DNA from: Takakia lepidozioides
Lineage: Eukaryota > Plantae > Bryophyta
Direction of reading: 5' to 3'
DNA: 64,000 bases
NCBI GenBank assembly: GCA_030704615.1
Contig: CM060732.1
Span: 5,828,001 to 5,892,000, forward strand
The translations under genes were made by a program, and so were the position numbers. Below, piece by piece: positions 6,421 to 48,039 of this stretch. The stretch's first letter is position 1. Each line of letters begins with the position of its first letter. The notes under the pieces are model-generated. The model worked only from the letters and a program-made list of their open reading frames with translations. It did not search any database and was not told the DNA's origin.

Positions 6421-6436
6421 TCTCTGTCCCTCTGTC

Positions 6437-6589: not shown

Positions 6590-8205
6590 TGGGAAGATAT
6601 TCACGTCATGTCAAGACATGGACAGGACCCATAAGGGTCATTGTCAATTAAAGACATAAACAACCCTGGATAGGGCACTATCTCACATTTTCAGTCTTGT
6701 CAAATCATCCCAAAAGACACCACCCAATCATCCAAGACAAAAAACAGGGTGGGAGGGCGGGGTTTGTTCTTGTGTGGGACAAGATAAGATATTGTTGTCC
6801 CTGTGCAGGCTGCAAGGCCTCTTGGTTCAGCCTGTACATATACCAGCCGCTTACCATTTCAGCCATTAATTATGGCAGGTCATGCATCAGCCAAGGTATA
6901 AGGACCAGCCTGCAGTTTGTCAGAATCTCAGTATGCCACCAAGCAGTCCAACTTGAGCCAGATGAAGTAGATTCCATATCATTTGTATTCACCCCGAGAC
7001 ATGTGATCATACAAGGCATCAAGGGAATGTGAATGCAGCCTGTCAAATTGCAGGTTCAAGACTTGTACCAACAAGTAGCATGAACAGCCGAGATCCAGCC
7101 TCTTTTGTATTAAAAAACAGATTGCAAGTCATAGGCCTAATGTCATGACAGATCCAAAACAATAGGTAGGATCCCATTGCAGCTTACCATCCTCATCCTT
7201 CAAGAGTTCCATGCTAAGACATGCAAAATACACCTTACTACGATCTAGTACACATCAGAAGTAGGCCTGAAAAGGAGCAGGGCAGTACCCTACCAGGCTG
7301 CCGCCTTAAACTTCAAGACCACCAGATCCATAGATACCCAAAACCGCCAAAAACATACCACCAAAAACCAGATCCTCTTTGGCCAAAATAACTTACAACC
7401 TAGCTTAATAATCCACAGGCTTTGTTGTCAAAGATCAAAAGGTAGGGTATGGTTTGTATGCAAGCCTCAGGAAATAGGCCCGTCAGGCCGAGCTGCGCAT
7501 CGGCGGCAGAACGACAAAGGCCAGAACGCAGGCTGTAGCATGTCAAGCCAGGGGCAGTCGGGTTGAAATCAGGGCTGCAGGCAGCAGCCACCTCACAGCG
7601 CACAAACCCCTAGGTCTCCTTAGCCCATATCCCAATCTGCATGCTCAAGAAACTTCAAAGTAGGTGAGGATCCTCACCTGGTCCCATCACAAGCCCCCAC
7701 AAAAACCAACAGGTTAGTGAGGATTGTGGAACCCCAGGTGAATCACAGACCCTCACACTTGTCATCAATGTCAACTAAGAAACTCAAAAGCAAGAGAAAG
7801 AGATAAGAACATGAGAATCCCTAAACTCCAAAGGCACCTTAAGCGATTGGGGAAGAGGGTTATGCGCCATCACCACCCGCAGCAAGCCGCCTCCACAAAG
7901 CACATAAGCAATGAAGCAAAGCAAGCACAATCGCAAGGCACTTGAAAGGAGGGAGAGAGCTTCCCATCATAAGCATCCTTGCTAAGCACAAAAAAAGCCA
8001 GAGGAGGGAAGATGCCACTACATTCATAGCGGTGTTTCCCGTTGCAAGAGAGACAAGGCGCCGCCTTCGCGCCCCCCCAGGCGCTCGTCTAGCATGGGTA
8101 CGACACCACAAACGGGGCAGCCACCGAAGCACGTCCGCCATAACACTCTCCTCGCGAGCTCAGAAGCACATCGCGTGCTTCTGACAGCGGGAGAGACGAC
8201 ATCGG
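6590..8205 (-). ncRNA. Structured non-coding repeat unit 1 (subfamily A), putative
   Basis: Shares a central stem domain (7636-7793) and a 3' hairpin domain (6590-6765) with other units; no conserved ORF. Confidence 0.55.
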
Positions 8206-8219
8206 GTTTTCCCCCGATT

Positions 8220-8725
8220 ATTCATCCATGGATGAAAAATAGTAGGACGCATCCGTATACCCTGACGGATTTCATCCGCAGCAAGGTTAAAAATAGGTTT
8301 TGGGGTAGGGGTTAGGGTTTCCACCGTAATTAATCATAATTAGGGGTAGTAAAGATCAATTCCAGGCCTTAATCACATCATCCATAAACAGATCACTTGT
8401 GTCAGGATGAAAAAGTAGGGAATATCATCCGTGGCAGCGCCTTACCTCCATCTAGGTAATTCTATTATTCCTCCCCAGACCATCCGGTATGGATAAAAAG
8501 AGTCAATAAAAGAGAAATGAAAAATTATCACCCTGGTAGTTTTTCATCCGGTACGGATGGAAAAACAGAATGTTGTTGGCAACCTCCATAGAGGTAATTC
8601 TTTTCTTCCATGGTGACTCATCTTGTATGGATGAGAGTCAATAAAGGAGGAAAGAAAAGTCCAAAAGAACCATCCTAGAGGTAACTCAGTGTCCATCCTG
8701 GTGGCTCATCCGGTATGGATGAAAA
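8220..8725. promoter_or_regulatory. Cluster of TCATCC-N5-GGATGA palindromes plus telo-box-like AAACCCTA (minus strand) upstream of unit 1
   Basis: For example tcatccggtacggatgg (8544) and tcatccggtatggatga (8707); gggttagggtttc at about 8310. Confidence 0.5.
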
Positions 8726-8785: not shown

Positions 8786-9066
8786 TAGCTGCTCAGTCAC
8801 TCCCCCTCCCCACCTTTTTCTTTTTTCTTTGTTGCCCCCTCTCTCCCTCTGTCTCCCTCTCTGTCCCTCTCTCCCTCCTTCTCTCTCTCTCTCTCATCTC
8901 TTTTGTGCTGCTCACAAAAAAAAAAAAAACCACAGAGGGAAAGAGGGGGTAGAAAAAATTAAAAAGAGAGAGGGAGAGAGTGGGAGAGAGTGGGAGAGGG
9001 AGAGAGGGGGCAACAAAGAAAAAAAAAAAAATGGGTTGGGGGGGGAGTGACTGAGCAGAGCAGCAG
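8786..9066. repeat. Short fold-back bounded by two junction half-sites (internally deleted, empty unit)
   Basis: About 65-bp inverted arms: gctgctcagtcactcccc...ttgttgccccctctctccctct and agagggagagagggggcaacaa...ggggagtgactgagcag. Confidence 0.75.
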
Positions 9067-9364
9067 CAAAATGTGGATAAAGCCCTGAAGCAAACACTTC
9101 AGGCCTGGGCCTGCTGCTGATAAGTTCAAATACGATCTATGAATGCATTGTTTGTTTTGCTAACCACTATGCAAATGCTCTTGAGGATGTTTGTTTAAAA
9201 GACATGGTTGCTTTTAAAACTTTCCAGCTGTTCTTGGGAACATATCTTGCTAAGTGGCAGATATATCTCAATATGGCTGAGAGATGCAATTACTCTGCTC
9301 TATGGAATATGAAACCAGTCTGTTTTGATGGTGATGGATTTTTTTCTTTCTATGATGAATATCT

Positions 9365-9548
9365 TACAATTCCCACCCTCCCACCCAGAGATTTCAGATA
9401 CCCTGAAGTCTTCATTATTCAATCAAATCGGATGCTATGTGTGAACGGAGATTTTAGATAGTGCCTTCTAAGGAGGCTGCTATGTCCTTTTCTGACAATG
9501 ACTTCAAAAGTCTTGTCTATGTCTTGACATGACATGAATATCTTCCCT
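9365..9548 (+). ncRNA. Inverted 3' hairpin domain, probably belonging to unit 2
   Basis: cccaccctcccaccc...gatagtgccttc-taa-ggaggc...gacaatgactt-caa-aagtcttgtc...gtcttgacatgacatgaatatcttccc is the same 3' domain in opposite orientation to units 1, 3 and 4. Confidence 0.5.
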
Positions 9549-9709
9549 TTCTCTTTTTAACTTTTTCTACCCCCTCTCTCCCTCTGTGGGGTTTTTTTTT
9601 TGTGAGCAGCACAAAAGAGAGGAGAGAGAGAGAGAGAGAGAGAGGGGGGGGAGAGGGACAGAGAGAGGAAACAAAAAAAAACAAAAAACAAAACAAAACA
9701 GATAGGCTT

Positions 9710-11640
9710 CCATAAGGCAGCTTATAGGTCTGGGGTACCAGTACCTAATAGTTATAAGTGTGATTGCCCCATTGTTCCTGGTTCAAACACTATAACTAGG
9801 TAGCAGGTTATGTTCCCAAAATGACTGGCAGCATTTAAGCGAGACCAAGTCTGCTAGAGAGGCTTCCATAAAAACATTGCAAGGTACTTTTACTAAGCAA
9901 TGATTGCAGTAGCAGTACTATTTGAGTGTTTCCTAAGCAGAATCAGGCCTGGAGTTGATGTTCCAGGGCCTTATCATCATTCTGCCAAAGTAAGAAAAAA
10001 GCTCAAGATGTACATGTTTGTTAACAGATCAAAACCAACAGCATGTGGTAGCTTAAGAGAATGTATGTATTCTGAGGAAGCTAAATAAGCACTACCAGGC
10101 ATGATTTGAACATAAGCTGCATAAACCAGAGCTGTCTTGGCTCGCCAAAAGACAAAAAATAGTGCCTGGAAAAGGCAACATACTGCCTTGTCAGGCTGCA
10201 GCTAAGGAAAAAAAATGCCACAATGCGGCTATGTCAAGAAAATAGATACCTTTCAGTAGAATATGTGTATTCTATGAATGCTAGCATATGCCTGCCCTTT
10301 AATCATGTAAACTGAGTTGTCAACAACTAGAGAACAAGTTAAAGAGTACAAAATAGGTCCTCCCCTGATGTCTCATTGGAGTAGTAGTTGCATTCAGCAT
10401 CAGCCACATTTTATGCGGAGTTCTTCGCATCTGCAAGCTTCAAACATTATGTAAGGTGAAGATCCTCACCTATGCCCGTCCCAAAAACACCACAAAAGAC
10501 ATTTTGTGTGTTAGTGAGGATGCGTCGGGTGAGTAACAGACCTTCACACTTGCTATCGATGTCATACATATAATCTAAAGCAAGCATATGCAGGGAACAA
10601 AGCATTAAACCACCAAGACCTTAAAGGCTTGTGGAAGCAGCGAAGCCTGCGACATGGTGTCCAAGACGTACATTCAAACAAGTGCAAATAGATTGCTTTG
10701 CTGAAAAGAATGAAGAGTTTATCAAGTGAGAGAGACTCCCTGAAAACCATGCAGGTGCTGCAGCTTCATCAATGAGCATTCAAGGGTTCAGCTAGCAACC
10801 AAATTGATTGCTTCGCAGAAAAATAAAAAATAAAAAATGTAGGTACCAGTAAGGGAGTTGAAGATCCAGCCGCACTTGCGCATGAAAAGCCTGGTAATCA
10901 GACCTAAATTTCAGATGCCAGGCTGCATAGCCTTCAATGTGCAGGTCCAGAAGCATCAAAACATCCTGGATTCATTCAATTCCAGTCGCATTTCCAGTGT
11001 GAAGACATAGCCGCCAATGCACATGGCAATTAGGCCTAGAATCAGGCTGCAAAGTCTTCATAAGGCCTCACCATAAGCATGAAATGCTTCAGATTCCTGC
11101 AGTAAAAGCACTTAGCAGCCCCCATTCACACCAGCAGAAGCTCACATCTGAAATCAGGTGTGAAGACATAGCCGCCAATGCACATGCCGAGACCAGCGAT
11201 TAGGCCTGGAATCAGGCTCAAATGCTTCGGATTCCTGCAGTAAAAGCACGTAGCAGCCACCATTCACACCAGCAGAAGCTCGTGCAATCAGGTATGAAGA
11301 CATAGCCGCCAACGCACATGCCAAGACCAGCAATTAAGTCTGGAATTCTGCTGCCAGGCTGCAAAGCCCTCATTACGCCTCTCCATAAGCACCAAATGCC
11401 TTGGATTTATGCAGCATAAGCACTCATGCGATCCAGTAGCTCAGGTATGAAGACAGAGCCGCCAAAGCACATGTTGAGACCATCAATTAAACCTGGAATT
11501 CAGCTGCCAGGCTGCAAAGCCTTCATTACGCTTCTCCATAAGAATCAAACGCCATGAATTCATGCAGCAGGAGCACTTAGCCGTCACCATTCACTCCAGC
11601 AGAGCTTAAGCACGAGCTTCGTGCAAAGTGATAAGGCCTC
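9710..11640 (-). ncRNA. Structured non-coding repeat unit 2 (subfamily B), putative
   Basis: Central stem domain at 10428-10585; upstream palindrome cluster at 11650-11785. Confidence 0.5.
10997..11600. repeat. Tandem repeat, four diverged copies of about 130-160 bp
   Basis: gt(g/a)tgaagaca(t/g)agccgccaa...gcacatg at about 10997, 11158, 11291 and 11444. Confidence 0.85.
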
Positions 11641-11879
11641 ACTCTACGCGATTTCATCCAGTGTGGATGAAATCGTGTATAACTGATAACAATAATAGGC
11701 ATTCATCTCTGATGTCATCCTGTATGGATGTCATTCGTCCACAATAAAAACCTAGGTACAGCATTCATCTGGCATGGATGAAGCAAAAAAAATGGATCAA
11801 GGATTAAGTTGAATCATACCAATTTCAAACCACATAGGCTTAAGAAAAAATGATTAGATCCCGATCCGATAGCTGGAGA

Positions 11880-13770
11880 GAGGGAAGATACTATGTCTTG
11901 TCGGGACATGGACAGGACCAAACATGGTCAATGTCAATTTTTACGACAAATCAACCTCATGAAGAGGCATTATCAGTCAAACTCCACTTCTAATCAGATC
12001 TTATGATGACCTCCATTACATTTCAAAGACAAAGAATCTACCTGGTAGATTTCAATGACAAGAAAATACGGGTGGGAGGGTGGGATTACTTAGAAGATCC
12101 CCTCCTTATAATAATCCGGCTTTATATTCTAAGGAACAGTATGCTAAACAAGTGTTCAGCCTGTTTTTATGCCTGTTTTAGAATTATAAGCTATGGGTGG
12201 CATCTAAGCAAACAATTAAATGTTTACCTATATCATGCAATAGTACTGCTCATCTGGAACCCAAAAGTTCCAGCTATTTTCCATTAATCACACAACCGGG
12301 ATATTAAATCATCTGGTTACTTGACAAGATAACCAGTTTTTTAATAACAAAAACCCAAAGCTTATCTGCTACATTTTTAGAACTTCTTGTAATCATGACA
12401 CAGAGTCAAAACTCATTGCATTGTTTAGTAAGCTTGATTTCCCAGAACTGCTTTCTACTGCAGTGTTCTGTATCAGAATATGCCATAGCTAGCAAAAAAC
12501 ATAGCTATCTTTTTTGTAACATAAAATCCAGAGCCATGTTGTAGGTTAATCAGTCTTTGATTACCAAGCAACAGCAGGGGCTTCTCTTTAAAACAACCAG
12601 ACCTGGTTTATGTTTGGGGTCATTATGTTACAACCTTGACAAGGTGTTTGCACAAACACTGTATACAATCTGTAATTACAGAGTGACATGAAGAGGTAGC
12701 AGTTTACTTACCTTAGCAGATTGTATGCAAGGTAAGAAGGAAAGGGGGTTCAGACATCCACAGAGGTTCCATATATTGAGCATATAAAGGCATACAGGGC
12801 TTAGTATAAACCATATGCAAGCTCTGGCCCTCCCCTACCGTGTTGCTTGAAAGTGTACATATCAGAGTAGCAAATCGTGCTCTAAGCATGAAAAAAGAGC
12901 ATATATTTGGTCTGGAAAACCTACTTCCAGTTTAATATTTCAATGCAGCGGAAATCATAACCCAGAGTCCTTAATAGAATTCATGTGTTCTAAAAAGGCT
13001 CGCTAATGCACTTGCTGCTTCAACACATAGATAAAAGTTGTAAGCATATCCAGATTGGTCATGTAGTGAGGCAAAAATGAGACATCTCCCTGGATAATCA
13101 GCTGATGTCGATGTCACTTCACTTGCAGGTTTGTCATCAGATTCAAGCTTCAAAAATCACATTAAGTGAGGACCCTCACCTGGTCCCATCACAAGCCCCC
13201 ACAAGAACCAACAGGTTAGTGAGAATTGTGGAACCCCAGGTGAATCGGGTCTCACGCTTGTTATCGTTGTACAACATGAGTTCTAAAGCAAGAATCAGTT
13301 CTAAACACAAGCAAGGTTATCCACAACCTTAATCGATTGCGGAAGAGGACTCGACATCGCTCCAAGCACTTGACAATCAACAGCACAAACAAGCAATGGT
13401 TTGCTTGAAATCTATGCGCATTTTAACAGGTGAAGAAACCCCCTGAGTTTTTATGAGCAGTGCTGAAACTTAATGATCCAGAGAGGATCTACAAGCAGTC
13501 GGGCAGCCTAAGGTAGATTGCCCGCCAAGGGAATAGGTCACCATACTGAGGGAATTGAAGCTCCGCCGCCGTTACGCCTCCCAAGGGAGATGAGAAAGGA
13601 CTGGAATCTTGCCAGAGTACTTGTAAACAACATTGAAGCGTCTCCATAGCCATCAAAATCATAAAATTCGTGCTAAGAGATCCCTCTGACACCATCACTT
13701 CATCTCCCGTAGAGAAAACGCACAGTATCGTGCAAGTTTTATGGCAGGAGAGGAGATATGGCAAACCATT
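11880..13770 (-). ncRNA. Structured non-coding repeat unit 3 (subfamily A), putative
   Basis: 3' domain 11880-12088; central domain 13140-13292; palindromes 13774-14005. Confidence 0.55.
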
Positions 13771-14099
13771 GCAATTTCATCCATGTGGGATGAAAAATAA
13801 GAAATGAAAAGTGAATATTCCCTTGTTGTCATCGCCATGTCATCCAGCAGGGATGACATCCTAAAATCGATGACCAGAACCTGGCATTCATTAGGGTTAG
13901 ATATAAATGACCTTAATAATCCAAAGGAACCAGGTAAAAAATGATAACCATAATTAACATTTAATGGAATTCATCCATTATTAACTATATCCGGTATGGA
14001 TGAAGATAGCATAAAGTTAATTATAGTTTAGTCAAAAATTACCTTAGTACCAAACCCTCTGGGTTATGGAATAGGTTACCAACAGGATCCATGTACAGA

Positions 14100-14270
14100 G
14101 GGAGAGAGAGAGGGAGAGAGAGGGAGAGAGGGGGCAACAAAGAAAAAAAAAAAAGGAACGTGGGGGGGGGTTTTGACTGAGCAGCTGCAGCTGCTGACCA
14201 GCAGCTGCTCCGTCACTCCCCTCCACTTATTTATTTATTTATTTTAGTTTCCTGATCTCTCCCTCTCACT
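14100..14270. repeat. Inverted-repeat junction site 2
   Basis: gactgagcagctg-cagctgctgaccag-cagctgctccgtcactc with the same flanks as site 1. Confidence 0.8.
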
Positions 14271-14391
14271 CCCTCTCTCTGTCTCTCTCTCTGTCTCTCT
14301 CTCTCCTCTCTTTTGTGTTGCTCACCAAAAAAATAAAAAATAAAAAAATGGAGAGAGGGGGTAGAAAAAGTTAAAAAGAGAGAGGGAGAGA

Positions 14392-16355
14392 GTGGGAAGA
14401 TATTCATGTCATGTCAAGACATGGACAGGACCCACTAGGGTCATTGTCAATTAAAGACATAAACAGCCCATGACAGGGCACCATCTAACACTTCCAATCT
14501 TGTCATAGCATACCAAGTGACATCACCCATTCGGTCATGATAATACAGGGTGGGAGGGCGGGGTTTATTCATGTTCAGATTCCTGACATGTACCCAAGTG
14601 ACCCTCTTGCACAATACAAGTTAAATTGCAGCCTCAGATTATATCATCCGTAATTATCCCAAGATATGCATCATGCAAGATATCATGGGCATGTAAGAAC
14701 AGCTTGCCACATTACAGATCCAAGATTTGTATACACAAGCATCTTGATGGACTAGCCTGTAGTTTATCATATTCCAAGCATGCAACCAATTAATCCTCTT
14801 GGGCATGACAAAATATAATGCAGCCTCACTCTTTACCATTTGTAAGTAACCCAAGACATGCATCATGCAAGGCTAGCTCTACTGGACCTTTGCCAGAGAT
14901 TATTTGCCTTATTTTGCCATCAGACCAGGCACCTGCAATGTATGATTTATTTTTTGGCCAAGTGGGCTTGGTCTCGGGCACTCAAAGTGTTTGTGTGTCC
15001 ATATCTTGAATCTATAATATGGCAGGCCTTTCTTCCATGCCAAGATGCCTTATATGATGCATGTCTTGGGGCAATTATACATGGTATAGAAGGAAGTTGC
15101 AGTCTGTCTTGTCATGCCCAAGAGGGTTACTTGGTTGCATGTTTGGAATCTAATAAACTGCAGGCTGGTCCATCAAGATGCTTGTGTATACAAGTCTTGA
15201 ATCTGTAGTGTGGCAGGCTGTTCTTACCTACCCAAGGGGCCTTGCATGATGCATGTCTTGGGGTACTTACAAATGGCAAAGAGTGAAGCTGCAATATGTT
15301 TTGTCATGCCCAAGAAGTTTACTTGGTTGCATGCTTGAAATCTGATAAATTGCAGGCTGGTCCTCCAAGGTGCTTGTATGAACATATCCTGAATCTGTAG
15401 TAGGGCAGGCTGTTCTTACCTACCCCGCCTGAAAGAGGCCTGTCATTGCCTAATCAGGCTGTCATCTTTAAAAACAGGGCCTCCTCTTCCTTAGAACCTA
15501 ATAGCCATTGATGCCTTACCCATAAACCATAACTCCTCTTTAAGGCCAAAACAGTACCTAGCTTAATAATCCACAGGCAATGCTGTCAAAGATTCAAGAC
15601 AAGGTAAGGTCCAGATGCTGGGCTTCAAGAGACAAGCCTGCCAGACCGAAGTGCTCCATGAAAGGCAGCACAACATAAGTCAAAAGTAAGCATCAGCATG
15701 CCAAACCAGGAGCAAGCAGGCCGAAATCGGGGCTGCAGGCAGCAGCCATGTCAAGACGCCATACACAATAGGTTCCCTTTGCCCACATCCATATCTGCAA
15801 GCTCAAGAGAATTCAAAGCAAGTAGGGATCCTCACCTAGTCCCATCACAAGCCCCCACAAAAACCAACAAGTTAGTGAGGATTGTGGATCCCCAGGTGAA
15901 TCACAAACCCCTACACTTGTCATCGATGTCAACTAAGAACCTCAAAAGCAAAAGAGAAAGACATAAAACAAAAGGAACCCTAATCACCAAAAGCACCTTG
16001 AGTGATTGGGGAAGGTAACTATGCGCCATCGCCACGAGCAAGCCACCTCCAGCAAACAAAGGAGAAGTGAAGCATATAAACACACTTGCTAGGTTTAAGA
16101 AGGGAGAGAGAGATACTTCCCAACACAAGCGCCGCTGCAAAAATTAAAAGCCAGAGGAGGGAAAGAGACGATGCATTCACAACATTGTCTCCCGCCTATA
16201 AGAAAAAACAAAGCGCCGCCATTGCGCATCCCCTGGAGATCGCCCAGCACGGGTACGATGCAGCAAACAGGGTAGCGGCAGAACGCAGACACCATAACGC
16301 TCTTCCCGTGAGCTCAGAAGCACTGCTCGTGCTTCTGACGGCGGGAGAGACATCT
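14392..16355 (-). ncRNA. Structured non-coding repeat unit 4 (subfamily A), putative
   Basis: 3' domain 14392-14566; central domain 15792-15950; palindromes 16372-16980; closest relative of unit 1. Confidence 0.55.
14655..15425. repeat. Long inverted repeat (arms about 215 bp) combined with an approximately 193-bp tandem repeat
   Basis: 14658-14872 is the reverse complement of about 15047-15265; 15047-15240 is repeated at 15240-15425. Confidence 0.85.
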
Positions 16356-16371
16356 TAGGGCTCTTGCCCGA

Positions 16372-17615
16372 TTTTTCATCCGTGCAGGATGAGTAATCAA
16401 CATCATATTCCTTAAAACCCGATGGATGTTATCCGTAGCTAGGTTAAACAGTAGGTTTTAGGGTAGGGGTTAGGGTTTCACTCCTTAATTAACCATAATT
16501 AAGGGTAATTAACATCAGTCCAGGGCCATCAGAAGTTGTACATTTCATCCGGTTCAGATGAAAAAATCATTGTGTTCATCCGTTGGAAAAAGTCCATCAG
16601 TAGGATGAAAAAACAGTAGATAACATCCAAGGCATCGGTTTTACATCCTAACAGGTAATTCAACATCCCAAAAAACAAATTGCCTTATCCAGTACGGATA
16701 AAAAAGCAATAAAAGAGGAATGAAAAAATTATATCCTGTCATTTTTCATCCAGTATGGATGGAAAAATAGGATGCCAGTGGCAACCCCCACAGAGGTAAT
16801 TCCTCATTCTCTGGTAACTCATCCAATATGGATGAAAGTCAATAAAAGAGGAATAAAAAATCAAAGACTAAGCTTAGAGGTAATTCAGTGTCTACCCTGG
16901 TAGTTCATCCGGTATGGATAAAAAATTGTTATAGGGCAGGTGAAAAAACTGTCAGAGTCCATCCGGTATGGATGAAAAAACACGAATACTGGCATTGATA
17001 AAACCGGCCAATTCCAAGGAGGGAGGGAGACAGAGGGAGAGAGGGGGCAACAAAGAAAAGAAAAAAAGGTGGGGGGGGGAGTGACCGAGCAGCTGCAGCT
17101 GCTGAGCAACAGCTGCTCAGTCACTCCCTACCCCCCCCCATATTTTTTTTATTTTTTTGTTTCCTGATCTCTCCCTCTCACTCCCTCTCTCTCCCTCTGG
17201 AAACTGGGTTTATGGAATTGTTGTCCCGACTTCCATCTTTGAAAATTTTGAAAAATTGGGTTGCAGGGAATTTTGGATGTTTTTCATCCAAAATACAATT
17301 TTTTTTCCCTAGTGAAACATTTCTTCACTAAATACCTATGAGTTGCAAAACTCCCGTCAGTTTTTATTTTTTCAATCCAACCTGGATGAAAAAAGGACTT
17401 CATCTGACAGGACCTAAATACGGGGCAAGACAGGTATAGAAAAGATGTTTCAAACCCTCGATGTTTTTCATCTAACCTAGATGAAATGTGGACTGCATCC
17501 GTCGAGTTCAAGACAGGATGAACGCACGATGTCTTTCATCTTCCGCGAATGAGAAACGGACAACGTCCGTCGGGCGTACAGGGTGGCGGATGTTTTTCAT
17601 CCTGAGAAGGATGAA
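16372..17615. promoter_or_regulatory. Palindrome clusters between divergent units 4 and 5
   Basis: About 10 copies of (T)CATCC-N5-GGAT(G/A) on both sides of junction site 3. Confidence 0.5.
17020..17200. repeat. Inverted-repeat junction site 3
   Basis: gagtgaccgagcagctg-cagctgctgagcaa-cagctgctcagtcactc. Confidence 0.8.
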
Positions 17616-17649
17616 TGACGGGCCAGACAGGGGAAAACCCTGCGCAACC

Positions 17650-19505
17650 CTAATGTCTTTCTTTTTGCGCTGCGAGAGCGCGCGCGATGGTGGCTTGGGA
17701 GGAGCGATGGTGCTCGTGCTGCAGATACCTTGAGCTACCAATCCTTGAGTGTTTATGGCTCCTGTGAGCGCCGCCTAGGCGGGCTCTTTAAGGCGATGGC
17801 AGTGGCTTAGAGATGAGGGAAGATTCACTGTCTCAGTTGTCTGTTTTTTTGCTGCACAAGGGAACCGCGGCAGTGATGGCAGAGGTACCACCTGCATGCT
17901 TATGACGTTTCCCTAGGAGCCCTCCTCTGGATCTTTGATGAATGGCGGCGTCTTGGTAGAACAAGGAAGTCTCTCTCCCTCCCTTTATAAACCCTACCTT
18001 TTGAGACCAAGCTCTTTTTTCTTGTGCTTGGCAAGACTTTGCTTTGGTTAAGGTAGCAGTGTTGTGGTGCTGGCGGAGTCCTCCCTGCACGGTTAGGCTT
18101 GTGGAGAGATGACGACTCTCCCCCAAACAGTAAAAAAAAATCTTTTTTTCTGTTTGTTTTTGCTTCCCTGCTTTCTTTGGCATTCTCTGCGCTTAGATTG
18201 AAGTGTATTTGACCTCGATAGCAAGTGTGGAGGCCTGCTACCCACCTCGTGCATCCTCACTAACTCACAATGTGTTGTGGTTGTTTTTGGGACGGGCACA
18301 GGTGAGGGCTTCCACTTAATATTTTGATGTCTAGGTGTTGTTGGATGCCAAGTGAGATTGCAGTGCAGGGGAAGGAATCGCTTGCCAGGGACTCATCTTA
18401 AAATGTTGAAAAACTAAACTACTCTATGGTTTTTCTTGATCCTACCTCTTTCCTTCCTTTATTTTTGAAGAACAAGTGTAATGCTTTCTACAATGGGCTA
18501 TTTTCAGCCCAGCCAGTGGAAGACCTCTGCTTTGTTGTGACAGCCGGGTTTATGATGGCTTGTGTGAGAGACACACATCTGTTTTCCAGGCCCTAGTTTG
18601 CTTTGCTTACCTTATGGTAGTTGGAAACAATTTGAGAGGCTGCAAGGAACTGTTTGTTACAGCTTTTCGGGTACCCATGTTGGCCCCTGTTATGTTCCAA
18701 CCCGGATGGCTTTGTTAGCTAGATGCTTAGGCCAGGGTATGGTGAAGATTCTGCCTGTGGATATTCGGCTAACAATGAAATATGGCAGCAATATATAACC
18801 GGTAACTGGTTTTTGAGGCAGTCAGGGTGGTCAAGTGGAAATACACCCCTGGACATGGTGTAATGATATGGTCAAGTGTGGAATGATGTGAATAGGGTGT
18901 ACTGACAGTATTAAATACTGTCACATGATGTGTATGCAGTCCTTTATCTTTACCTTGCTGGGTCATGAACTTTGATTTTCAGCTGTAGCAAGAAATAAAG
19001 GTATAGGGGTATTCTGGAAAACTTACCAGACATATCCACATCCCCTGTGGGAGCAAGCTGTGCTGCAGACCAGTCTAAACAAATACTGGCAGGGCAAGGT
19101 ATTTAAATATGTGATGTCCAAGTGTTCTTTTTGTTCTTTTTGCTTTCTGAAAAAAACCCTCCATGACACCCATGGGTTTGAGTAAGTATGCTTGGATTAC
19201 AGCTTGCGGACAGTAAATCTCCATTTAACCTGCACCACATCAAGGCCAAAATATGGCCAAACACCCGCCATCCCACCCAGACCTCTAAATGTGTATCATG
19301 ATCATGACTGGTGGTCAATTAGCATCAGTGGCATACTCTTTGGGTTATGAATAATACTGACATGAACACATTACTGTGCATGGATGTAATTCTGGATTTT
19401 CTAAGCTTGATGATTGATGGATGGTGCCACTGTTAAGTGGCTGATATGTCTGTTTATTCTTTTATGACAACGACCCTAGGGGTCATGTCTTTGTCTTGAC
19501 ATGAC
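17650..19505 (+). ncRNA. Structured non-coding repeat unit 5 (subfamily B), putative, divergent from unit 4
   Basis: Central domain 18190-18330; 3' domain 19262-19505, clipped by the Gypsy LTR; palindromes 17270-17615. Confidence 0.55.
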
Positions 19506-20462
19506 AAATGCTATTCGAAGTATCTCTGTGTAGAGTGAACGTGAGATGGTGAGAATGTGTATCATCTCATAATAGTTCTTATTTTCTCTTGACTACCATC
19601 TGCTTGTATGAACCAAGAGGCTTCAGTCCTTTCAACTAAGATCTTTTATGCTTAAGAGACTGTAGATTGGTCTTAATCAATAGGATTAAGCAGTCTGCAA
19701 GGATATGGCTTCATCCGACGTTCATGGTTTAGCTATCCTTAAAACGATTACTTCGTAATCGTTTCTGAAAGCATACCGTCGGACAACCTCTGTTGCATGT
19801 CTTAGGAAATGGGCAGTAGTGTTAATAGCTTGTTTTGTCTAAGTCATAAACCAGCGGTTAACATTTGGCGACCATACTGGGGACTAACGGTATGTTGAGT
19901 TCAAAAGTACTCAAAGAAGGATGGTTACTCAGTGATTTCTTGAAATCACGACAGAACGAGTCAACAGAAGCAAAGGAATGGAAAACATTCCTGAAAAATT
20001 TTCATGGTTTACCAAGAGCAATACAACAGAAAATCTTTATGTCAATCGTGAAAGAAGATGACAAATGGGGATTGAAGGGAGGAGTGATCAGTATTACACG
20101 AGCACCTTGGGAATGTAGGATTAGAAGTGAAGAGTGGTTGTCTCGTCTAGCTCTATTGATTACTCTAATCCCAATCAGAAAAGTTTGTTACACTAGTTAT
20201 ATTTTCAGAGAAGGATGTTCAAATTATGAATATTGTCACACGATCACAGAGACAGTGGAGTACTGGATACCCAAAGACTTATTGCAAGTTAGATACACTG
20301 AAAAAGATAGATGGTATTATTGTGCCCATTAAAAAAATTGGTGATCAATCAGTAAAAAGGAAAATTAAGTTGTAATATGGATTCTTGCAAGATAGGATGA
20401 GTCTTGAAGAAAGGGTAGAGACACTATAAATTTTCTTTACTGACATACCAAGACTGTTTTAA

Positions 20463-23400
20463 ATGGTACTGAAAAGGAATTCTACATATGATGTGGGAAT
20501 GAATGAGGAAATTAAAGAAAAAACTAAACAAGACAGAGCTGAACGAATAGAGAAATATGCTGCAGAAAGGGAGGCTCGGTTAAGAGAAGAGTTCCCAGAA
20601 TTACAGAACTTGAAAATTATTCAAGGTGAGACATCAAACAGTGATAAACCAGAAGATCAGGAAATCGGATCGGTGGGAAGTTGGAACACTACACCAGAAG
20701 AAGTTGCCAGTAATGTACTTGGTGAATGGTTACCACAAGAAAGATCTGAAGGACCTTCTACAGTAACAAGCCCAAATAGAGGTTTTGCTTAAATATTAGA
20801 AGAAAGATTTGAGAACATTTTGAGTGAAGAAGGTGAAAGAAGTGAAAGCACTTCTCCAGAAAAGATAACCAGAACTGCACTCAAAGCTTTTAAAGATTCA
20901 TTAAGCTTAGTATGGACAGCAGCTGGAAGACAACTATCATTGGGACAATGACCTCCTAGCTTTGAATCACTGTTTGGAAGACAAATACCAACACCGCCAC
21001 AGCCAGCAGCAGCGGGACCATCCCAATTTGGACAACCAGTTGCACCAGCTACACCGATGGCTTTAGCAGCAAGCAAAACCATACCACCATTTCCTTTATA
21101 TGATGGGAAATCTGATCCAGATATCCATTTTAATCAATTTGAAAACATGTGCACCATTTACAATGAAGCAACAAACCAAGAGAAGATCCGACTATTTCCT
21201 TGTTCAATGGCCCGAAAAGGCATTGAATGGTTGGCAACTTTCCCAGCAATCACTTTGCGAATTGGGCGGATATGAGAGCCGCGTTTCAAGAAAGATATAG
21301 ATCCAACAAATCCACGTCTGAAATCTTCACAGGATTACATAACCTAAGACAGAAAAAGAAAGAATTGGTAGTCGACTACCTGGAGAGAATGAAGACTCTG
21401 ATCAGGAAACAGGAAACTACCTCAAGCACCAGGGGATGATTTGCAAAAATCATGGTTCATCAATGGACTTCATCCTGAATACGTAACCATGGTTACAGTC
21501 ATGCCTAACAACACTTTGGCTGAAGCAGTAGGGACTGCAAAGAAGTTGGAATGGGATGATTCATCAGAGCAGAAGCAAAGATTCCAAGGATCTCTTGAAA
21601 GAAGAAGAAGAAGACTTGATGATGAAGAAGAAAAGAAAAACCCAAGCAAAAGAAGAAAGAAGTGATTGACAAAACCACTTGGATCAGAAGATAGCAGAGG
21701 CTATCAAGAATTTTAAAGATGAAGGGCACGAAAAGGCACATGATGTCACAAATGCGGGACTGCAGAATCTGGTAACGGAATGCCATATGAAGGACAAATA
21801 CTGTGATATTTGTCATATGAACAATCATAATACCAGCCTGCCAGTTGCGCACCAAGCATTAGGCAGAAGTGGGAAATATGGAAGCCGGACCAAGTGTAGC
21901 CATAAGTGTGGTAACCCCTGTAGTGGATACTCTTGCGGTAACCCAAACTCAGGCCAAGAAACCAAAACCTCCAGATAAGGAGATTGAAGAAGAACGGAAA
22001 ACAATATCCAGAAAGTGCAGCATGGCAGGAGAAAAAGAGCTTACACCAGGAAGTAAGTAAAACCATAGCTCAAATGCAAGAGGGAACCCATATACCTTCT
22101 CGAGAGCCAACTCCAGATAAGCAAATCAGACCAACGGTGAAGACCATGAATACAACCACGGAAACAGAATTGGCCGAAGTAATCTGCCAGACCAAGACCC
22201 AAATTACCATTGGACAATTATTAAAAATTGCTCCACACTGCAAGAAAACTTTATTTCGGGCAATCGAGGCATTGACCCCCACACCAAAACAAAAACCAAC
22301 ACGAGAGGTTTACACGATTAAACCCACAACTATACGACAAACTCCAGATTACGACGAAGCAGTACCCGTAATACAAGTACGTATTGGACGGAAGATGGTA
22401 ACGAATGTACTCATCGATGGAGGATCAGGAGTGAATATCATGACAGAAAAGATGAAGAAGTCATTAGGATTGGGGCACATGGAACCTGCTCCATTCACGG
22501 TACGAATGGCTAATCAACGAAAAGTGCAACCATTGGGGATCATCAGACGACTTGCAATGGAAGTAGCAGGACTGGTATACGAAATATCAGTAACCATTCT
22601 CAGAATGGAGGATGTGGCAGATGGATATTCACTACTATTTGGCCGACCATGGTTAACACAAGCCCAATCACACCACGATTGGGGAAGTCAGATTCTCACA
22701 GTCAAAAAGGGAGCGAAACAAGTCACCATCACGACGAAGCAACGAGGTACCATTCCACGAGAGAAACGACCTTGCATAGTGGAAGAATATGATTGGTCCA
22801 GTGGACTGTCGGATGAAGAAGAAGCCACAATATACGCAGCACATCCACAGTTGGAACCTATTGGACAACTGGTGGTCAAGCATACCACAACAGTAGGATG
22901 TCACATGGTGAACACCCAAGGAGAACCAAATACTTCGAGAAATGAAGATCCGGAGGAAGAAGCGATGGACACACCTCAACACCCGGCCCGGTTCTATCAA
23001 GAAAGGAAGAAGACATTCAAATCAGCGAATACTGCCACAATTGCAACCATCGGACAAGAGATTGCAGGATGGACAGTAACGGAAGAAACTCAATTGATTC
23101 AAGTGAATCTGGGAACAGTGGAAGAACCACAGATAATACGAGTAAGTGCAGGTCTCGAAGAATAATTTCTACAAAAAGCCACTGCATTATTCACTGAATG
23201 CAAGGATGTATTTGCCTGGACCTACAAGGATTTGAATGGGATACCTTCTAATATCTGTCAGCACCGAATTGAATTGGAAGTTGACACAAAACCAATTCGT
23301 CAGAACCGTTACAGAATGAACCCCAACTATGCAGCTAAAGTTTGGGAAGAAATGAAGAAGTTACTGGATGCAGGATTCATATACCCAGTAGAGACACCAC

Positions 23401-26115
23401 AATGGTTATCGCCCATTGTGATAGTACCCAACAAATGGAAAACTACGAGTGTGTGTGGACTATCGCAAGTTAAACGCAGGAACCAAGAAAGATCTTTTTC
23501 CACTACCTTTCACTGAAATAGTGTTGGACATAGTGGCTGGACATGAAATGTACTCATTCATGGATGGGTTTAGTGGGTACAACCAGGTACAGATGGCAGA
23601 AGAAGACCGAGAAAAGACCGCATTCATCACTGAATGAGGAACATATGCTTACAAAGTCATGCCATTTGGACTTTGCAATGCACCAGCCACATTTCAACGA
23701 GCAGTATCTGAGATATTCGAGAACTATCTCATGATTTTATGTAGGTCGTTTTGGATGATTTCAGTGTCTTTGGACAGAAATCCAAACTTTGGCCAGTTAA
23801 ACTTTGCCTACAAGCCTGCAGAAACAATGGAGTAAGTCTCCAACCCGGAAAATGTACATTCTGTGGAATTCAGGATTATTATTGGGACACATTGTGTGCC
23901 AACAGGGAATTTTTGGTAGATCCAAAGAAGTGGAGGTTTTATCCAAAAATACCACCACCAGAAAATCCAATAAAACGCAAGAGATTTCTGGGACAGTCGA
24001 GCTATTACAGAAGGTACATGGACAAATATGCTCATAGAGCGGCACCAGTCTATAGACTGCTAAAGCAAGATGCCGAATATCGATGGTCTCCAGCTTGCCA
24101 GGAATCATTTGATTCACTAAAAAGGCACTCACAGCAGCACCAATTCTGATAAATCCAAGATGGGATTTACCATTTCATGTACAAGATGGCATCAGCATTG
24201 CGTTGGAGCGGTTCTAGCTCAGAATGTGACAGCACAATAGATGCCACCAATCTACTATGCAAGCAATTGTTGACAGCAGCAGAAAAGAACTATAGCACCA
24301 CAGAAAGGGAGCATTGGCAATGATTTATCGTGTTCAAAAATTTGGCATTATTTACTTGGCAATCGCTTTAAGTTTTATTGTTTATCATCAGGCTGTAGTT
24401 CTTCTAACTCGACCACTAACTAGTGGCAGGTTGCTCGATGGTTATTACTTCTTCATGAGTATGACTTTGAAGTTGTTCATAAACCAGGAGATTACATGTT
24501 ACAAGCAGATCATCTGTCAAGGATTACTACAGGAGAAACCACCAGCCCGGGGGTAGAGGATCAACTTCCCGATGCATTTTTGTTTGTTGTTCAACAGAAG
24601 CACCAGATGAAGAGTACAGATTCTATAAATGCTCTGGAATGTTTCAAGGAGACTATCACCTGCCAGATGCTCTCAAACTCATGGACGACACGGATGAAGA
24701 TGAAATTCATCCGATGAAGATGAACCTCTTGATGAAGGACTTATTATTGAAGAAGAGCCAGATCCACAAGAAGAAGATGACAAGGAAAACCGAAGAAACA
24801 AAACAATCAAGAATTGGCCAATCTCATATTGGAGCTTATACAGTTACCAAGAAGAATCAAAGATATTCAGGATCAAGATCAAGATGATTGGCAATGGCCA
24901 ATCAAATACTATCTGAACACAACACAGGATTTTCCTGAAGTTCACCAAAGATGACAGGAGGAAGCTTTCAATGAAAAACAAGCCATACACATTAATCAAA
25001 GATGAATTCTGCACAAAAGATGAATTGACTCCATAATGAGAAGATGTGTAAACAAAGACCAAGCCAACACAGTAATGCAAGAACTACACGAAGGAATTGC
25101 CAGGTGACACTTCAGTTCGGACCTACAAGCAAAGAAAATATTACTAGCAGGCTATGGGGGCCTATTATATTTGGGAGATACTTATGAACACTGTCAACAG
25201 TGTGATGTCTGCCAGAGGATGGACCGGCGAACGAACGGGAAGGGGACTCTGCACCCAATACTACCAGATAACCATTTCAGCGTTGGGGCTAGACTTCGTG
25301 GACCCATTAAACCTCCAGCAAGGTCCACCAAAACCAATACATCCTCATAGCCACTTACTACACTACCAAATGGGTAGAGGCCAAGGCCCTAGAGACAACA
25401 CTACCAGATCAACAGCCAAATTCTTATATGAAAACATCAATCACACGATTTGGTTGCCCACCTGGATTCGTCAGTGATCAGGGATCACACTTCATAAATG
25501 ATGCTATAAAATGCTTGACGAGGAGTTCATGATTGTACATCACAAGAGTACTGCTTACTATCCTTAAGGAAACGGTCAATCCGAATCTACCCACAAAATA
25601 TTTGCACTATCTTAACCAAGATAGTAAATGCCAATCGTACAGATTGGGATACCAAATTGAACAAAGCACTGTGGGCATTCAGGACATCATACAAGGTGAC
25701 CACGAAGCCATACACCTTTCAACTGGTGTATGGAGGCAGAGGCACTATATACCCATTGAATGTATGATACCCACACTACAACCAGAAACTCATGAACGAT
25801 GGGGCTTAGAAGAATCATTTACGGTCAGGGAATATGAATTATTCCATCTGGAAGAAGTCGAGCAGATCCCGCGATAATATGGCACGGATCCAGGAACAAC
25901 GAAGAAAAGATATCCGAAGGGAAAGAGAAATCTTTCCAGGATGGGGATATTGTATTAGGTTACCAAAAATCAAGAAGATCAAACTGGGGGGCGGAAAATT
26001 GAAAATGCCATGGATGGGACCATTTCAAATCAAAAGGGTACATGACAATGGAACTGTTGATTTTGCAAACCTTGGAACAAGAATTCGTGGGATCGAATTA
26101 ATATTAACAAATTAA
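20463..26115 (+). pseudogene. gag-pol, frameshifted
   Basis: gag YDGKSDPDIH, WFINGL, CDICHMNNH knuckle; protease VLIDGGSGVNIM; RT CVDYRKLN, DGFSGYNQ, MPFGLCNAP, LDDF; RNase H EKNYSTTERE; integrase LDFVDP and KLKMPWMGPF. Confidence 0.92.
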
Positions 26116-26254
26116 AAGGCTACCAGGGATACATGACAAAACCCTTATACATGATTTATACCCAACGAGAAAGATCAAACGAAGAGGAGGAGCGCGAAAC
26201 CACCAAGCCTACTACATTCATCACGACACGGTGAATTAGCATGTACTAAGACAA

Positions 26255-29200
26255 GTGGCAACACGAATTCAGGGCACCACGACGGCTAGACCACCATTTA
26301 TCTGGAGGACAACATTACCACCCCGTATACCGTATGGTGAACCGTGGCCAGCACATATGCCCTACAGAACAGTGAACGAATGCGAAACGGCCAACGAGTC
26401 ACTGCTTGTGTTAAATTCCGAGATGTACGCTTTAGATCACCCCACCGACAGTGGTAATCATACACCACTACCCTTCGATCATAACACAGAGGCGGAACGA
26501 CGGCGCAATCCAACGGATTGCCAAAAGACGGCGGACGATAAGGGCAAAGCCATTAAACCAAGCTACAAGTACTGCGCTAACGCCGCCCGTCTAAAAACGG
26601 ACCACATACCAAAGTGGATGAACACAACTCAGAGGGATGAACATAAACTGACCGAAACTGGACAATCATCAACGACCATCAGTTTTAAACAAAACAAATC
26701 ACGAAGAAAAAACCAACGGAAGAAAATCAAGCACAAAAGAGATGAAGTTTTCTCAAAACCGTTACCTGAGGCTAAATGCTTCTTGGTAAGCCTGGGCCCA
26801 ACAATTAAAGCTAACCACGCTTTAAACCTAGGCAACCAGCAGGACAAAATTATCTCCACGAGAACCTCGAGAGAAGTTAGAGGAGAAACCTACAGAGATG
26901 AACCCCTACTTAAACCCATGAGCGAACTCCTCACCTTCTCTTCCGCAAACTGGAAATTGTTGTATACACAACTTCCAGTGTGCTTCATACTTCTTGTGAT
27001 ACAGGAATTGGTACTCCAATTCCTTACAGCAACCGCGAGACTAAGAGAAATGGCAGGCACCAAGCGGAAGGCACCAAGTTCTTATGCGCAAGTCAATTTC
27101 AAAATCAGCCCAGCGTTGCGGAAGATTGAGCAGGACACAGAGACACAGGAGACGTTGGACAGTCTTGGCCTGCGATACTTCATCACCACGATGGACTGGA
27201 ACCTGAAGCACGACAAGCTATGCAGGGAGTTCTTGGAGAATTACAACACCAGCACTCGGAGCACAAATGTCCACGACACGCACATCCTGCTGACAGATAA
27301 GTACTTGGCGGAAGTATTTCACCTTCCCAGTCTGGACGTACCACCGCACACCGGCAAACCTCCAAGGTTTGTACTTGCAGATTTGTTTGAGAATCTCAAC
27401 CAAGCAGATCAAGGCTACACATGCAGCCACAGCAAAAACCATGGCTTCAGGAAGATAGCTCCAGTATTTAGCACATTGCTTTGCCTCAGGCAAAACCATA
27501 GCCACTGTACCAAGGAGCTAATCGACCAAGTGTTGATTTGCTTCAAAGGGAAAATCGTGAATTGGGCAAGCTTCTTATTGAAGAAGTTAACTCAAGAACT
27601 GACCAGGTTGACAAAGAAGAAGAAGGAAGCGACTGTTACCATGGCAACTCCATTGTTACTCCACATGATTCGACACATTGTACACCTAACGGCCGAAGAG
27701 CAAGCAACGTTGGGAATCATGCAACGGGTAGATACAATGGAGGAAGAAGGAAGTGAGACGGCAGCATGTCAGGAAGAAGAAGAGGGTGGACTTGCAAAGA
27801 GAGCCCGGATCAACGAAGCAACCACAAGTGCAGCAGTAGAGGACATCATCAACTCGACGGCTGATTCCCCAGTACAAAGAGAAATGGAGAATCAACAGCC
27901 AGAAGGAGGGTACAAACCACAGACCAACGAAGCAACGCCCATGGAAATTAGCCATGGCAACACCGAAGCACAACAAGCAGCACACACAAAGGCCACACAA
28001 TCAGAGGAGGGAGACATAGTGGCGCAGCAACAGCAGATGGTGCAACAGGCACCCGACCAGCAGCACCAGATAGTACAATAGACACCCGATTAGCAGCAAC
28101 AGCAGATGGTGCAAGAGGCACCGAGTCAGCAGCAGCAAGACAGAAATTCCAATTTGGAACTACTACTAGCACAACAAGTTTTAGATACAACAGCATGGGA
28201 CACAGGGTTGGAAGAAGCACCACAAAATGTCATTCTGTAGGCAATACAAGCATTGGGGCAACTGACAGTTTGTATGGACAGGGCCAAGGATTACATCAGT
28301 CCGGAAAACCTGAACATGATCTTAGACCACATCAAAGAGAAGCACCAGAGGGAATTGGTCACTGCAAGAACAATATGTAACCATGAGGTTACAATTGCAG
28401 CATTAGAAGATCAAAAGTCAACCTTACTCCGCCAATACAACACATTGGCACAACGCAAAGATGAGTGGGAGCAAAAGTGGGAAAGACAGAGAGACGAAAC
28501 ACACCATGTCCAAGCCGACCTCGATGCAGAGCAAGAGAGATCTCGAAAAATAGAGACAGGGGTGGAAACACTCACAGGGCAGGTGCAAACATTAAAGCAG
28601 CAGGTGGAGACACTCAAGGAGCAGCTGAGGACTGCCAGAGATCAGGGAACCAAGTGGCTCAACAGCAACACTGCACTGCTGAAGCAAAGGGAGAATGCTG
28701 AGAGCAGGTTGTTTACCGCCACCACAGAAAGAGACATTGCCATGGACAATGAACAAGAATGGAAGCAGCAGCTGGAGAAGCTGACATTGCAAGCAGGGTT
28801 GGATGCAACAGACGCAGCCTTAGCCAGAGCCTGGTTGAATGAAGGGAGTGAATTGGAGATGAAGAAACTCAACAGGGCAATGGTGAGGCACATGAAGTGC
28901 CAGTTGGCGAAATTGGTGACAGACATTCATGATGAGTTCCTGCCACCAATTCCAGAACAAGAGGAACTCATGGACGAAGAGGATCAAGAGGAGCAAGATC
29001 ACAAACGAGAGACACCAATACAACAACAACAACAACACCAACACAAACACCACCAGCAACACAACCACCACCAAACCAACAGACACTGGTACAGGCCACA
29101 GCAGGGCCTCAAGAGGTAAACCCTGTAACACTACCAAGTGTCCTGGTAGCATCAACTTCAGTAGCAGTGGATGATTTCCAAATCATGCCATGCAAGCAGG

Positions 29201-29988: not shown

Positions 29989-30505
29989 CAATCCTGGGAC
30001 GCACTTCCTACCTCGCAGACAGGCATGCCACCACCTTACATCCCCAAGAGATACAGCAAGTACAGGAACTGACAAAATTGTGCGGACACAATTTCAAAAG
30101 AGGGGGGGGGGAATAAATGATAACGGCTATGCTACGAGGGACAGACAACGAGGGTCGCAACGGGACATACTGGGTAGTGATGGACGTACACTACCCAAGC
30201 CACGGGCAGAGACGGCTAAGTACGCGGTACTTAGCCAATGGCGGGACAAGGGTACATTACCACGAGAGCAGTAAGGGGTAGTGTAGTAGCCGTGAGCCGT
30301 GAACCACGATATCATACGGTCACGATAGCATCGGCTTTAACCAATAGAGGGAGTAGTGGACCATTTACCACTATGGCTCACGACCACTACAACGAGCCAC
30401 TTTTAGCAAACCTTTTAGGTTGCCTAGGTAGTTAGGCAAACGATCATTAACGACCGCAGGCTGTAACGGCTCTTTCGAGCATAGTATAAAAAGACTACAC
30501 GCAAC

Positions 30506-47989: not shown

Positions 47990-48039
47990 GATGGTGTCTG
48001 ATGGGGGGAAAGAAAGAAAGAAGAAAAAAAAAAAAACCT

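Follow-up and report, generated by a model that had tools for sequence, protein, structure and literature searches.

The 64,000-nt stretch of Takakia lepidozioides DNA analysed here (assembly GCA_030704615.1, contig CM060732.1, positions 5,828,001 to 5,892,000 of the forward strand; hereafter the window, numbered from its first letter) carries six copies of a ~125-nt core that is, with good confidence, a selected RNA structure inside a non-coding repeat. The core is the best-conserved portion of a ~2.7-kb unit, and its central domain is a rod-like RNA hairpin of ~100 nt, or of ~165 nt including a weaker closing stem. We tentatively read this domain as a cis-acting module in which a combined splice-site-like sequence, AG|GUGAGG, would be masked by CUCACCU, a segment resembling the 5' end of U1 small nuclear RNA (snRNA), beside a branch-site-like CUCACUAAC.

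Cores were located with covariance model R1 (filters off), which scored the six copies at 109-129 bits; the strongest non-core match in the window reached only 13.5 bits. The alignment of these copies (A6) split them into subfamily A, comprising unit 5 (18206-18330, plus strand, 129.2 bits), unit 2 (10441-10568, minus strand, 127.9 bits) and unit 6 (33198-33326, minus strand, 127.3 bits), and subfamily B, comprising unit 1 (7649-7777, 124.6 bits), unit 4 (15807-15935, 120.5 bits) and unit 3 (13151-13276, 109.1 bits), all on the minus strand. Mean pairwise identity was 0.70 in the core and ~0.40 in the flanks (0.43 upstream, 0.37 downstream). Between units 1 and 4 the core was ~91% identical (manual count on A6) vs 72% over 1.4 kb, and the P1 stem differences between these two units were mostly compensatory. 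Motif searches placed the conserved blocks at six sites; they returned 5 matches to GAYVTCGATRRCAAGT, against 0.53 expected by chance, and also located CTCACTAAC.

The outer stem, P1, was found in unit 5 exactly where the initial annotation, made from the sequence alone, had drawn it: a 9-bp pairing of GUGGAGGCC (18227-18235) with GGCUUCCAC (18307-18315), followed by the 5-nt bulge UGCUA (TGCTA in the DNA; 18236-18240). The stem arms that this annotation listed for units 1, 2 and 6 match A6 letter for letter, as do the bulges TGTGA, TGTTA and TGTAA. The bulge reads UGYDA in the five copies that keep it and is reduced to GA in unit 3 by a 3-nt deletion. Five of the nine P1 pairs were altered on both sides (e.g., AU/GC at one pair, GC/AU/UA at a second and CG/UA at a third), and 96% of P1 cells were paired. 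For the proposed structure as a whole, which includes the inner stem P2, 94.4% of cells paired, vs 42-51% when the 3' partner was slid by 1-3 columns, and the claim that sequence differs across copies while pairing is kept was upheld. The covariation score was 0.416 vs 0.271 ± 0.029 in shuffles, none of 500 shuffles reaching 0.416. RNAalifold recovered P1 and P2 from the aligned copies, and P1, bulge and P2 were formed by every copy when folded as a single sequence (z -1.5 to -3.0). P1 and P2 contained 8 G-U cells and 2 C-A cells; since the opposite strand would pair worse, the RNA strand was taken to be the sense strand of the unit.

P2 behaved differently from P1. In unit 5 its 5' arm consists of CCCACCU, which resembles the U1 5' end, and the extension GUGC (18241-18252); this arm pairs with 18296-18306 (18241-18247 with 18300-18306), and the 3' arm holds an invariant AG|GUGAG that combines 3' and 5' splice-site-like letters. 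The central 5 bp, CACCU/AGGUG, showed neither variation nor covariation across the six copies, and therefore the sequence of P2 is constrained besides its pairing. All copies add 2-4 bp to P2, though not with the same letters: GUGC/GCAC in unit 5, GC/GC in both unit 2 and unit 6, and GG/CC in subfamily B. This extension covaries (U-A in unit 5, C-G in unit 6). The TCACCTGG/CCAGGTGA extension described earlier for units 1 and 3 is present there, and likewise in unit 4 with one G-U pair. P1 is maintained purely as a helix whose sequence is free; in P2 and the interior blocks it is the sequence that is maintained.

Flanking P1 on its 5' side is a conserved 17-nt block, UGACNUCGAURRCAAGU (18210-18226 in unit 5, from invariant A6 columns), that includes the partly conserved palindrome AUCGAU. 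Above P2, single-sequence folds gave an irregular upper helix and then an apical hairpin capped by UGUN. In unit 5 the interior holds the invariant, branch-site-like CCUCACUAAC (18255-18264; A6 and motif search) and the apical hairpin CACAA-UGUG-UUGUG (18266-18279; pairing counts and single-sequence fold); in subfamily B, UUGUG of this hairpin pairs instead with an upstream CCACAA insertion. The interior blocks had been called conserved and unpaired. Their conservation was upheld, but they are probably partly paired (CCUCA with UGGGA in subfamily A, with GUGGGGG in subfamily B), and the conserved ACUAAC block contributes its AAC to closing the apical hairpin with the UGUN loop. The U-tract noted before GGGAC occurs in subfamily A (units 2, 5 and 6), but subfamily B has GGGCUUGUGAUGGGAC in its place. 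The enclosing GCUUU/GAAGC stem was predicted by RNAalifold, with support that is partial and weak. The broader picture of invariant segments on covarying stems agreed with the compensatory changes in P1, the strand-fitting G-U bias and the excess of core over flanking identity.

No Rfam family matched the window at gathering thresholds, and with Rfam 15 relaxed to E values up to 10 no match overlapped any of five cores tested; the weak relaxed matches were generic microRNA (miRNA)-precursor models confined to GA/CT palindromes. One pattern scan of metagenomes gave 0 matches and a second gave 10 loci, all of them chance matches rejected by the covariance model; a search for relatives via a spurious 106-aa antisense open reading frame (ORF) across the unit 4 core also found none, and these three results carry little weight for a plant-specific repeat. 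The core fold and sequence family carry no existing name, and the domain is a structured RNA domain carried by a repeat.

Contigs from two small public runs bearing the same species label (contigs only, tagged "RNA?" as a guess) were placed on 14001-20000. They were mostly 88-99% identical to the window and therefore represent paralogs or a divergent accession. Unit 5 was covered over 17663-19508 and unit 4 over about 14400-16211, whereas depth was 0 at 16401-17000 and 17201-17600, in the site arrays, in both runs. Word depth was highest over the core module (bins of 544-1089 in run X1, single contigs up to ~2800), and contigs crossed the core unspliced, without a joint. The runs probably derive from RNA, because total contigs amount to 33-49 Mb, the longest contigs are <10 kb and the array region is absent despite paralogous neighbours.

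The splice-signal reading, which the initial annotation lacked along with the transposon-like setting, was drawn from the following letters. AGGUGAGG, CACC and CUCACUAAC are invariant in 6 of 6 copies of A6. AGGUGAGG amounts to a 3' splice-site-like AG abutting a 5' splice-site consensus (AG|GUGAGG), and AG|GUGAGG is base-paired in P2 with CUCACCU, whose sole difference from the U1 snRNA 5' end, CUUACCU, is the change that matches GUGAG rather than GUAAG. The AG is preceded at 34-40 nt by CUCACUAAC, a match to the branch-site consensus, and a U/G-rich tract separates the two. We prefer this reading because the splice-like letters never vary and P1 varies freely provided that it pairs. On such a mechanism, which motif resemblance makes possible but somewhat doubtful, the invariant blocks would be spliceosomal recognition signals held inactive or regulated; the domain would act in cis on the transcript of its own unit, with the hairpin governing access of the U1 and U2 small nuclear ribonucleoproteins (snRNPs), and the outcome would be an effect on splicing, nuclear retention or premature polyadenylation. 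The abundant unspliced contig form would be consistent with the masked state.

Several points weigh against these conclusions. The case for splice signals consists of motif resemblance, and the contigs of the two runs showed no joint at the splice-like sites, leaving usage of the signals unsupported. The structure itself is deduced from six sequences in two subfamilies within one 27-kb neighbourhood, where kinship inflates covariation statistics that are modest to begin with, and the interior pairings, which vary between subfamilies A and B, are provisional. Within the window no autonomous ORF-bearing relative of the unit was found. If the runs were DNA, depth would reflect copy number and transcription would then be unproven. 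Finally, a contig form in both runs joins 17891 to 18640 and lacks the intervening 748 nt (17892-18639), which include the core as well as the TATA-like box and an upstream hairpin, H(-1), and which have a 5-nt CTGCA repeat at both sides. The core module may therefore be separable from the unit. This skip was rejected as an intron (no CTGCA register gives GT-AG, GC-AG or AT-AC ends on either strand) and, lacking canonical intron ends, was taken as a difference among paralogs at the DNA level, which arose either through an insertion that duplicated 5 bp of target sequence or through a deletion at microhomology.

Other explanations of the conserved hairpin were weighed against the masking module. 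It could act in cis as the signal by which a non-autonomous retroelement is packaged, dimerised or primed, the hairpin being recognised by Gag or reverse transcriptase from an autonomous partner; conservation would then reflect selection for mobilisation, and the tandem arrays would have arisen as in arrays of Cassandra terminal-repeat retrotransposons in miniature (TRIMs). This is unlikely on present evidence, although RNA-level covariation including G-U pairs, several conserved hairpin domains along a non-coding unit, the AUCGAU palindrome in a single-stranded 17-nt block, a multi-copy family with closer paralogs among the run contigs, and a 5'-truncated copy (9069-9534, plus strand) retaining just the 3' domain would all fit it, and tandem arrays of non-autonomous long terminal repeat (LTR) elements are documented (PMC7215508). 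Against it, no primer-binding site (PBS) for initiator methionine tRNA (tRNA-iMet) was found beside the units within 2 mismatches, neither TG..CA LTR ends nor matching target-site duplications (TSDs) were found for the unit, units 3 and 5 have no AUCGAU, the covariance model placed no core in either of the two Gypsy elements of the window, and unit borders are long palindromes rather than direct repeats. A real short spliceosomal intron of ~80-95 nt in the leader of the unit transcript (GUGUG.../GUGAGG ... CUCACUAAC ... YAG), whose ends would be zipped by P1 and P2 and whose splicing would regenerate ..|GUGAGG as a recursive-type site, seems rather improbable. The GU donor, branch site and YAG motifs are invariant, lie in the right order and spacing and are the most conserved letters; the GC for GU of unit 3 at one candidate donor is an allowed variant, and the length is typical of short plant introns. 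However, contigs, which cannot show absence, crossed the core only unspliced at top depths and reported no joint, the upstream donor lies within the covarying P1 and is poor in subfamily A (GUGAAG, GUGAUG, GUGGAG), and P1 and P2 would sequester both splice sites, not present them. Only a slim chance is given to a hairpin that engages the spliceosome while remaining unspliced, or to an undescribed self-processing RNA; in the former case branch site, U-tract and AG|GU would form a "zero-length exon" gated by the U1 mimic, and a plant transposon family may gain from it a decoy for snRNPs or a switch for nuclear retention.

The core might instead be a family of small non-coding RNA genes in its own right (snRNA-like or Sm-class, about 125-165 nt long), each gene having upstream promoter elements of its own and being copied along with a ~300-nt promoter. 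The conserved module is indeed short (~300-450 nt) and bounded by diverged flanks, the core has high contig depth, the upstream block UUCCCCAAUCG resembles the upstream sequence element (USE) of plant snRNA genes, and subfamily A has GUUUUUGG. Yet the USE-like block is the 5' arm of the conserved RNA hairpin H(-1), and its spacing varies (55-65 nt from the UUAAGG-type loop to the core by manual count); the plant snRNA promoter layout of USE and TATA at fixed spacing, ~30 nt before the start, was not found, no TATA box being at canonical spacing. The Sm site RAU(4-6)GR is not conserved: GUUUUUGG lacks the A, and the Sm-like tract is missing from subfamily B, which has GGGCUUGUGAUGGG. An equally deep contig covers 17908-18128, well upstream of the core, and neither a 3' box, a consistent terminator nor an Rfam snRNA match was found, all of which makes such a gene family improbable. 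A new self-cleaving ribozyme carried by the repeat, like the hammerheads of retrozymes and Penelope-like elements or the hepatitis delta virus (HDV)-like ribozymes of R2, is highly improbable despite the invariant junction nucleotides on covarying helices, the multi-copy host repeat and, in subfamily B, a GUGAGG that could pair with CCUCAC as a pseudoknot-like alternative. That pairing is not kept in subfamily A, contigs span the whole core intact, and no ribozyme family in Rfam matched, hammerhead included. The hammerhead pattern CUGANGA...GAAA is absent, the bulge CUGUGAU lacking the essential A6 of that ribozyme, and the helices are nested (P1-P2-...-P2'-P1'), unlike the HDV-like double pseudoknot order P1-P2-P3-P3'-P1'-P4-P4'-P2'; the catalytic core raised in the initial annotation found no support, and binding of a protein, as that annotation also suggested, or of an snRNP is plausible. 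Equally improbable as a ribozyme is a DNA-level protein-binding palindrome or cruciform of a DNA transposon without RNA function. The unit does have other DNA-like palindromic sites (TTTCATCC-N5-GGATGAAA) and palindromic junctions, but the G-U and C-A counts are strand-asymmetric (8 vs 2), the arms stand ~80 nt apart with an asymmetric 5-nt bulge, and the long invariant blocks are not palindromic.

Further known families were compared with the core. It does not resemble a plant miRNA precursor, in which a ~21-nt duplex free of large asymmetric bulges is expected (here 9 bp, a one-sided 5-nt bulge and then 7-11 bp), and A6 has no conserved small nucleolar RNA boxes (C/D RUGAUGA and CUGA; H/ACA ANANNA and an ACA 3 nt from the end), nor did any such model match the core. 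RNA polymerase III transcription is unlikely because of T5 runs inside the core. Also rejected were a telomerase-RNA template (TAAACCCTA occurs in unit 5 alone), a TAS3/miR390 site (~15/21 positions match, with seed mismatches), a K-turn involving the bulge (no G-A tandem is left, given the covarying pairs that close P1), a group II intron (despite GUGUG, domains 5 and 6 are missing and Rfam gave no match) and a Cassandra-type element (5S boxes and the iMet PBS are absent; Cassandra box A matched at chance level, outside the units).

From 5' to 3', the unit consists of a GA/CT palindromic junction, an array of TTTCATCC-N5-GGATGAAA sites, a GC-rich stretch, a TATA-like box, H(-1) and the core, followed by ~1.1 kb of variable sequence, a CCCACCCTCCCACCC block and a 3' hairpin domain. 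Units 1-4 are arranged head-to-tail on the minus strand at about 6.3-17.1 kb. Unit 5, on the plus strand, adjoins unit 4 head-to-head, and unit 6 is located at 33 kb. Between 6196 and 19865 there is no ORF of at least 150 aa, and tblastx between units showed conservation in all frames with no frame preference; coding potential was rejected on these two grounds. ARAGORN found no tRNA.

The head of unit 5 (17172-17651, plus strand) is built of ~65-nt subrepeats with palindromic TTTCATCC-N5-GGATGAAA-type sites. This motif had 24 matches in the search vs 0.07 expected, confined to unit heads and to a duplicate at 31985-32464, with two to eight sites per unit (8541-8725, 11651-11673, 13774-13796, 16373-16978, 17370-17485, 32183-32298 and 33774-33796). 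Half-sites are invariant and the spacer is variable, and the sites look like putative targets of a dimeric DNA-binding protein, either a transposase or a transcription factor. The 480-bp duplicate (17172-17651 and 31985-32464) is 97.7% identical in the same orientation. Its position beside the truncated tail of unit 6, a unit of opposite orientation, suggests a recent rearrangement. Where the heads of units 4 and 5 meet, the palindromic junction (GA-rich/CT-rich) spans 17019-17199, and similar modules lie at 6271-6435, 8787-9068, 9544-9688 and 14096-14400. Such modules (180-300 bp) occur at every unit border with a central GC-rich hairpin, GGAGTGACNGAGCAGCTGC / GCAGCTGCTCAGTCACTCC, and carry a GCTGCTCAGTCACTCCCC motif at their arms; their orientation relative to the unit bodies is inconsistent, and they may be an independent foldback element or one similar to miniature inverted-repeat transposable elements.

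H(-1) lies ~50-95 nt upstream of the core and forms a hairpin in 5 of 6 copies. It was placed at 18124-18156 (plus strand) in unit 5 by single-sequence fold and alignment, with minus-strand equivalents at 15972-16016, 7812-7860, 10590-10642, 33355-33407 and 13300-13351 in the other units. In units 2, 3, 4 and 6 the 5' arm is UCCNCAA-, the loop is of UUAAGG type and the 3' arm varies while staying complementary; unit 5 lacks the UUAAGG-type loop, and unit 1 has a weaker, different structure. The UCCNCAA(UC) of the 5' arm is the part that resembles the plant snRNA USE. A shared H(-1) consensus was not found by RNAalifold because the 3' arms fall at differing columns. The 3' domain of unit 5 (19262-19506, plus strand) comprises three short covarying hairpins and ends in GUCUUGACAUGACA. 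A seventh copy of this domain, at about 9440-9534 (plus strand), belongs to the 5'-truncated unit at 9069-9534, in which nothing but a CCCACCC block and this domain survives; between its hairpins and those of the other copies there is covariation (GCCUU..GAGGC and GACUU..AAGUC).

Within unit 4, a 299-nt inverted repeat (14575-14873 with 15047-15345, 79% complementary) lies between the core and the 3' domain. Opposite-strand contig joints at 14875 with 15427 or 15470 were present in both runs, and paralogs therefore appear to differ by an inversion at this repeat. A Gypsy-type LTR retrotransposon (19510-31819) is inserted directly after the 3' domain of unit 5. Its 354-bp TG..CA LTRs are 97.2% identical; a PBS-like TGGCGACC follows the 5' LTR, and the 3' LTR is preceded by a purine tract. 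The 5-bp flanks of the element are unmatched (ACAAA vs GATAG), suggesting recombination between elements. ORFs at 124-1033 (plus strand) seemingly encode an integrase C-terminus and a chromodomain-like motif (..YEVEAILKSRRFKNRETEYLIKWKGY.., translations read by eye), and a Gypsy element of the chromovirus type would have its 3' end in this segment. At 48000-49560 lie tandem arrays (periods of 107-229 bp) organised around AAGTCGGCGCCGACTT, a palindrome, together with long runs of A or T.

The unit looks transposon-like and non-coding. It may be a non-autonomous DNA transposon that retains the leader of its parent, a retroelement, or a long non-coding RNA gene derived from a transposable element. 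With regard to an LTR element, the GA-rich tracts of the unit belong to palindromes and the 748-nt indel with the CTGCA repeat does not end in CA. With regard to a terminal-inverted-repeat transposon, palindromic junctions and motif arrays are present, but junction-arm orientation is inconsistent, TSDs were not definable and no transposase was found.

If the masking reading is right, the core would represent an abundantly represented structured RNA family of a seedless land plant that has three spliceosomal signals as its conserved letters, locked in a helix by a U1 mimic, and a case of a transposon-like non-coding transcript controlling or exploiting spliceosome binding. Covariance model R1 provides a new RNA motif for genome-wide annotation; were the domain merely a cis-signal of a non-autonomous element, it would still be a marker for defining the family and its autonomous partner.

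Among known systems, Sm-class snRNAs and spliced leader (SL) RNAs share with the core their size class, multi-copy nature and, for subfamily A, a U-tract, and SL RNA stem-loop I likewise has a 5' splice-site sequence paired within a stem. They differ in that the Sm site is not conserved here, the promoter is not of snRNA type and the transcript is apparently much longer; SL trans-splicing is not known from land plants. Retrozymes, Penelope-like elements and R2 also carry RNA domains with invariant cores on covarying helices, but the present core has no hammerhead core, HDV-like double pseudoknot or Rfam match. Ds and dSpm are non-autonomous class II elements that derive from Ac and En/Spm, respectively, and keep the leader and 3' untranslated region of the parent. 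The unit resembles them in its inverted-repeat borders, subterminal arrays of short palindromic motifs of a protein-binding type, GC-rich region after the array and want of an ORF, and differs in having no definable CACTA or hAT termini or TSDs and in its one-sided motif arrays; we know of no strong RNA-level selection on an internal domain in elements of this type.

The tau exon 10 stem, SMN2 TSL2 and the splice donor (SD) hairpin SL2 of the HIV-1 leader are stem-loops that mask a 5' splice site. As in these, pairing with a complementary segment upstream locks a consensus 5' splice site into a conserved helix, and HIV-1 SL2 further shares the placement of an SD hairpin in a non-coding leader beside other hairpins. 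Unlike them, the present domain has a masking strand that is a near-copy of the U1 5' end, encloses a branch site and U-rich tract within the hairpin, and is multi-copy in a non-coding repeat with no splicing observed in contigs. Cassandra TRIMs are non-autonomous, transcribed and tandem-arrayed and carry a structured RNA domain (PMC7215508). The unit is likewise an ORF-less, non-autonomous and probably transcribed plant repeat in tandem arrays with a conserved, structured, small-RNA-like domain, whereas Cassandra has as its domain a 5S rRNA that includes boxes A and C, with a tRNA-iMet PBS after it, both being absent here, and the ~2.7-kb units are separated by GA/CT palindromes, not LTRs. 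By analogy, the putative working mode of the domain is closest to the 5'-splice-site-masking stems and its setting is closest to the Cassandra TRIMs, with some likeness to Ds- or dSpm-type derivatives as well, and it is a member of none of them.

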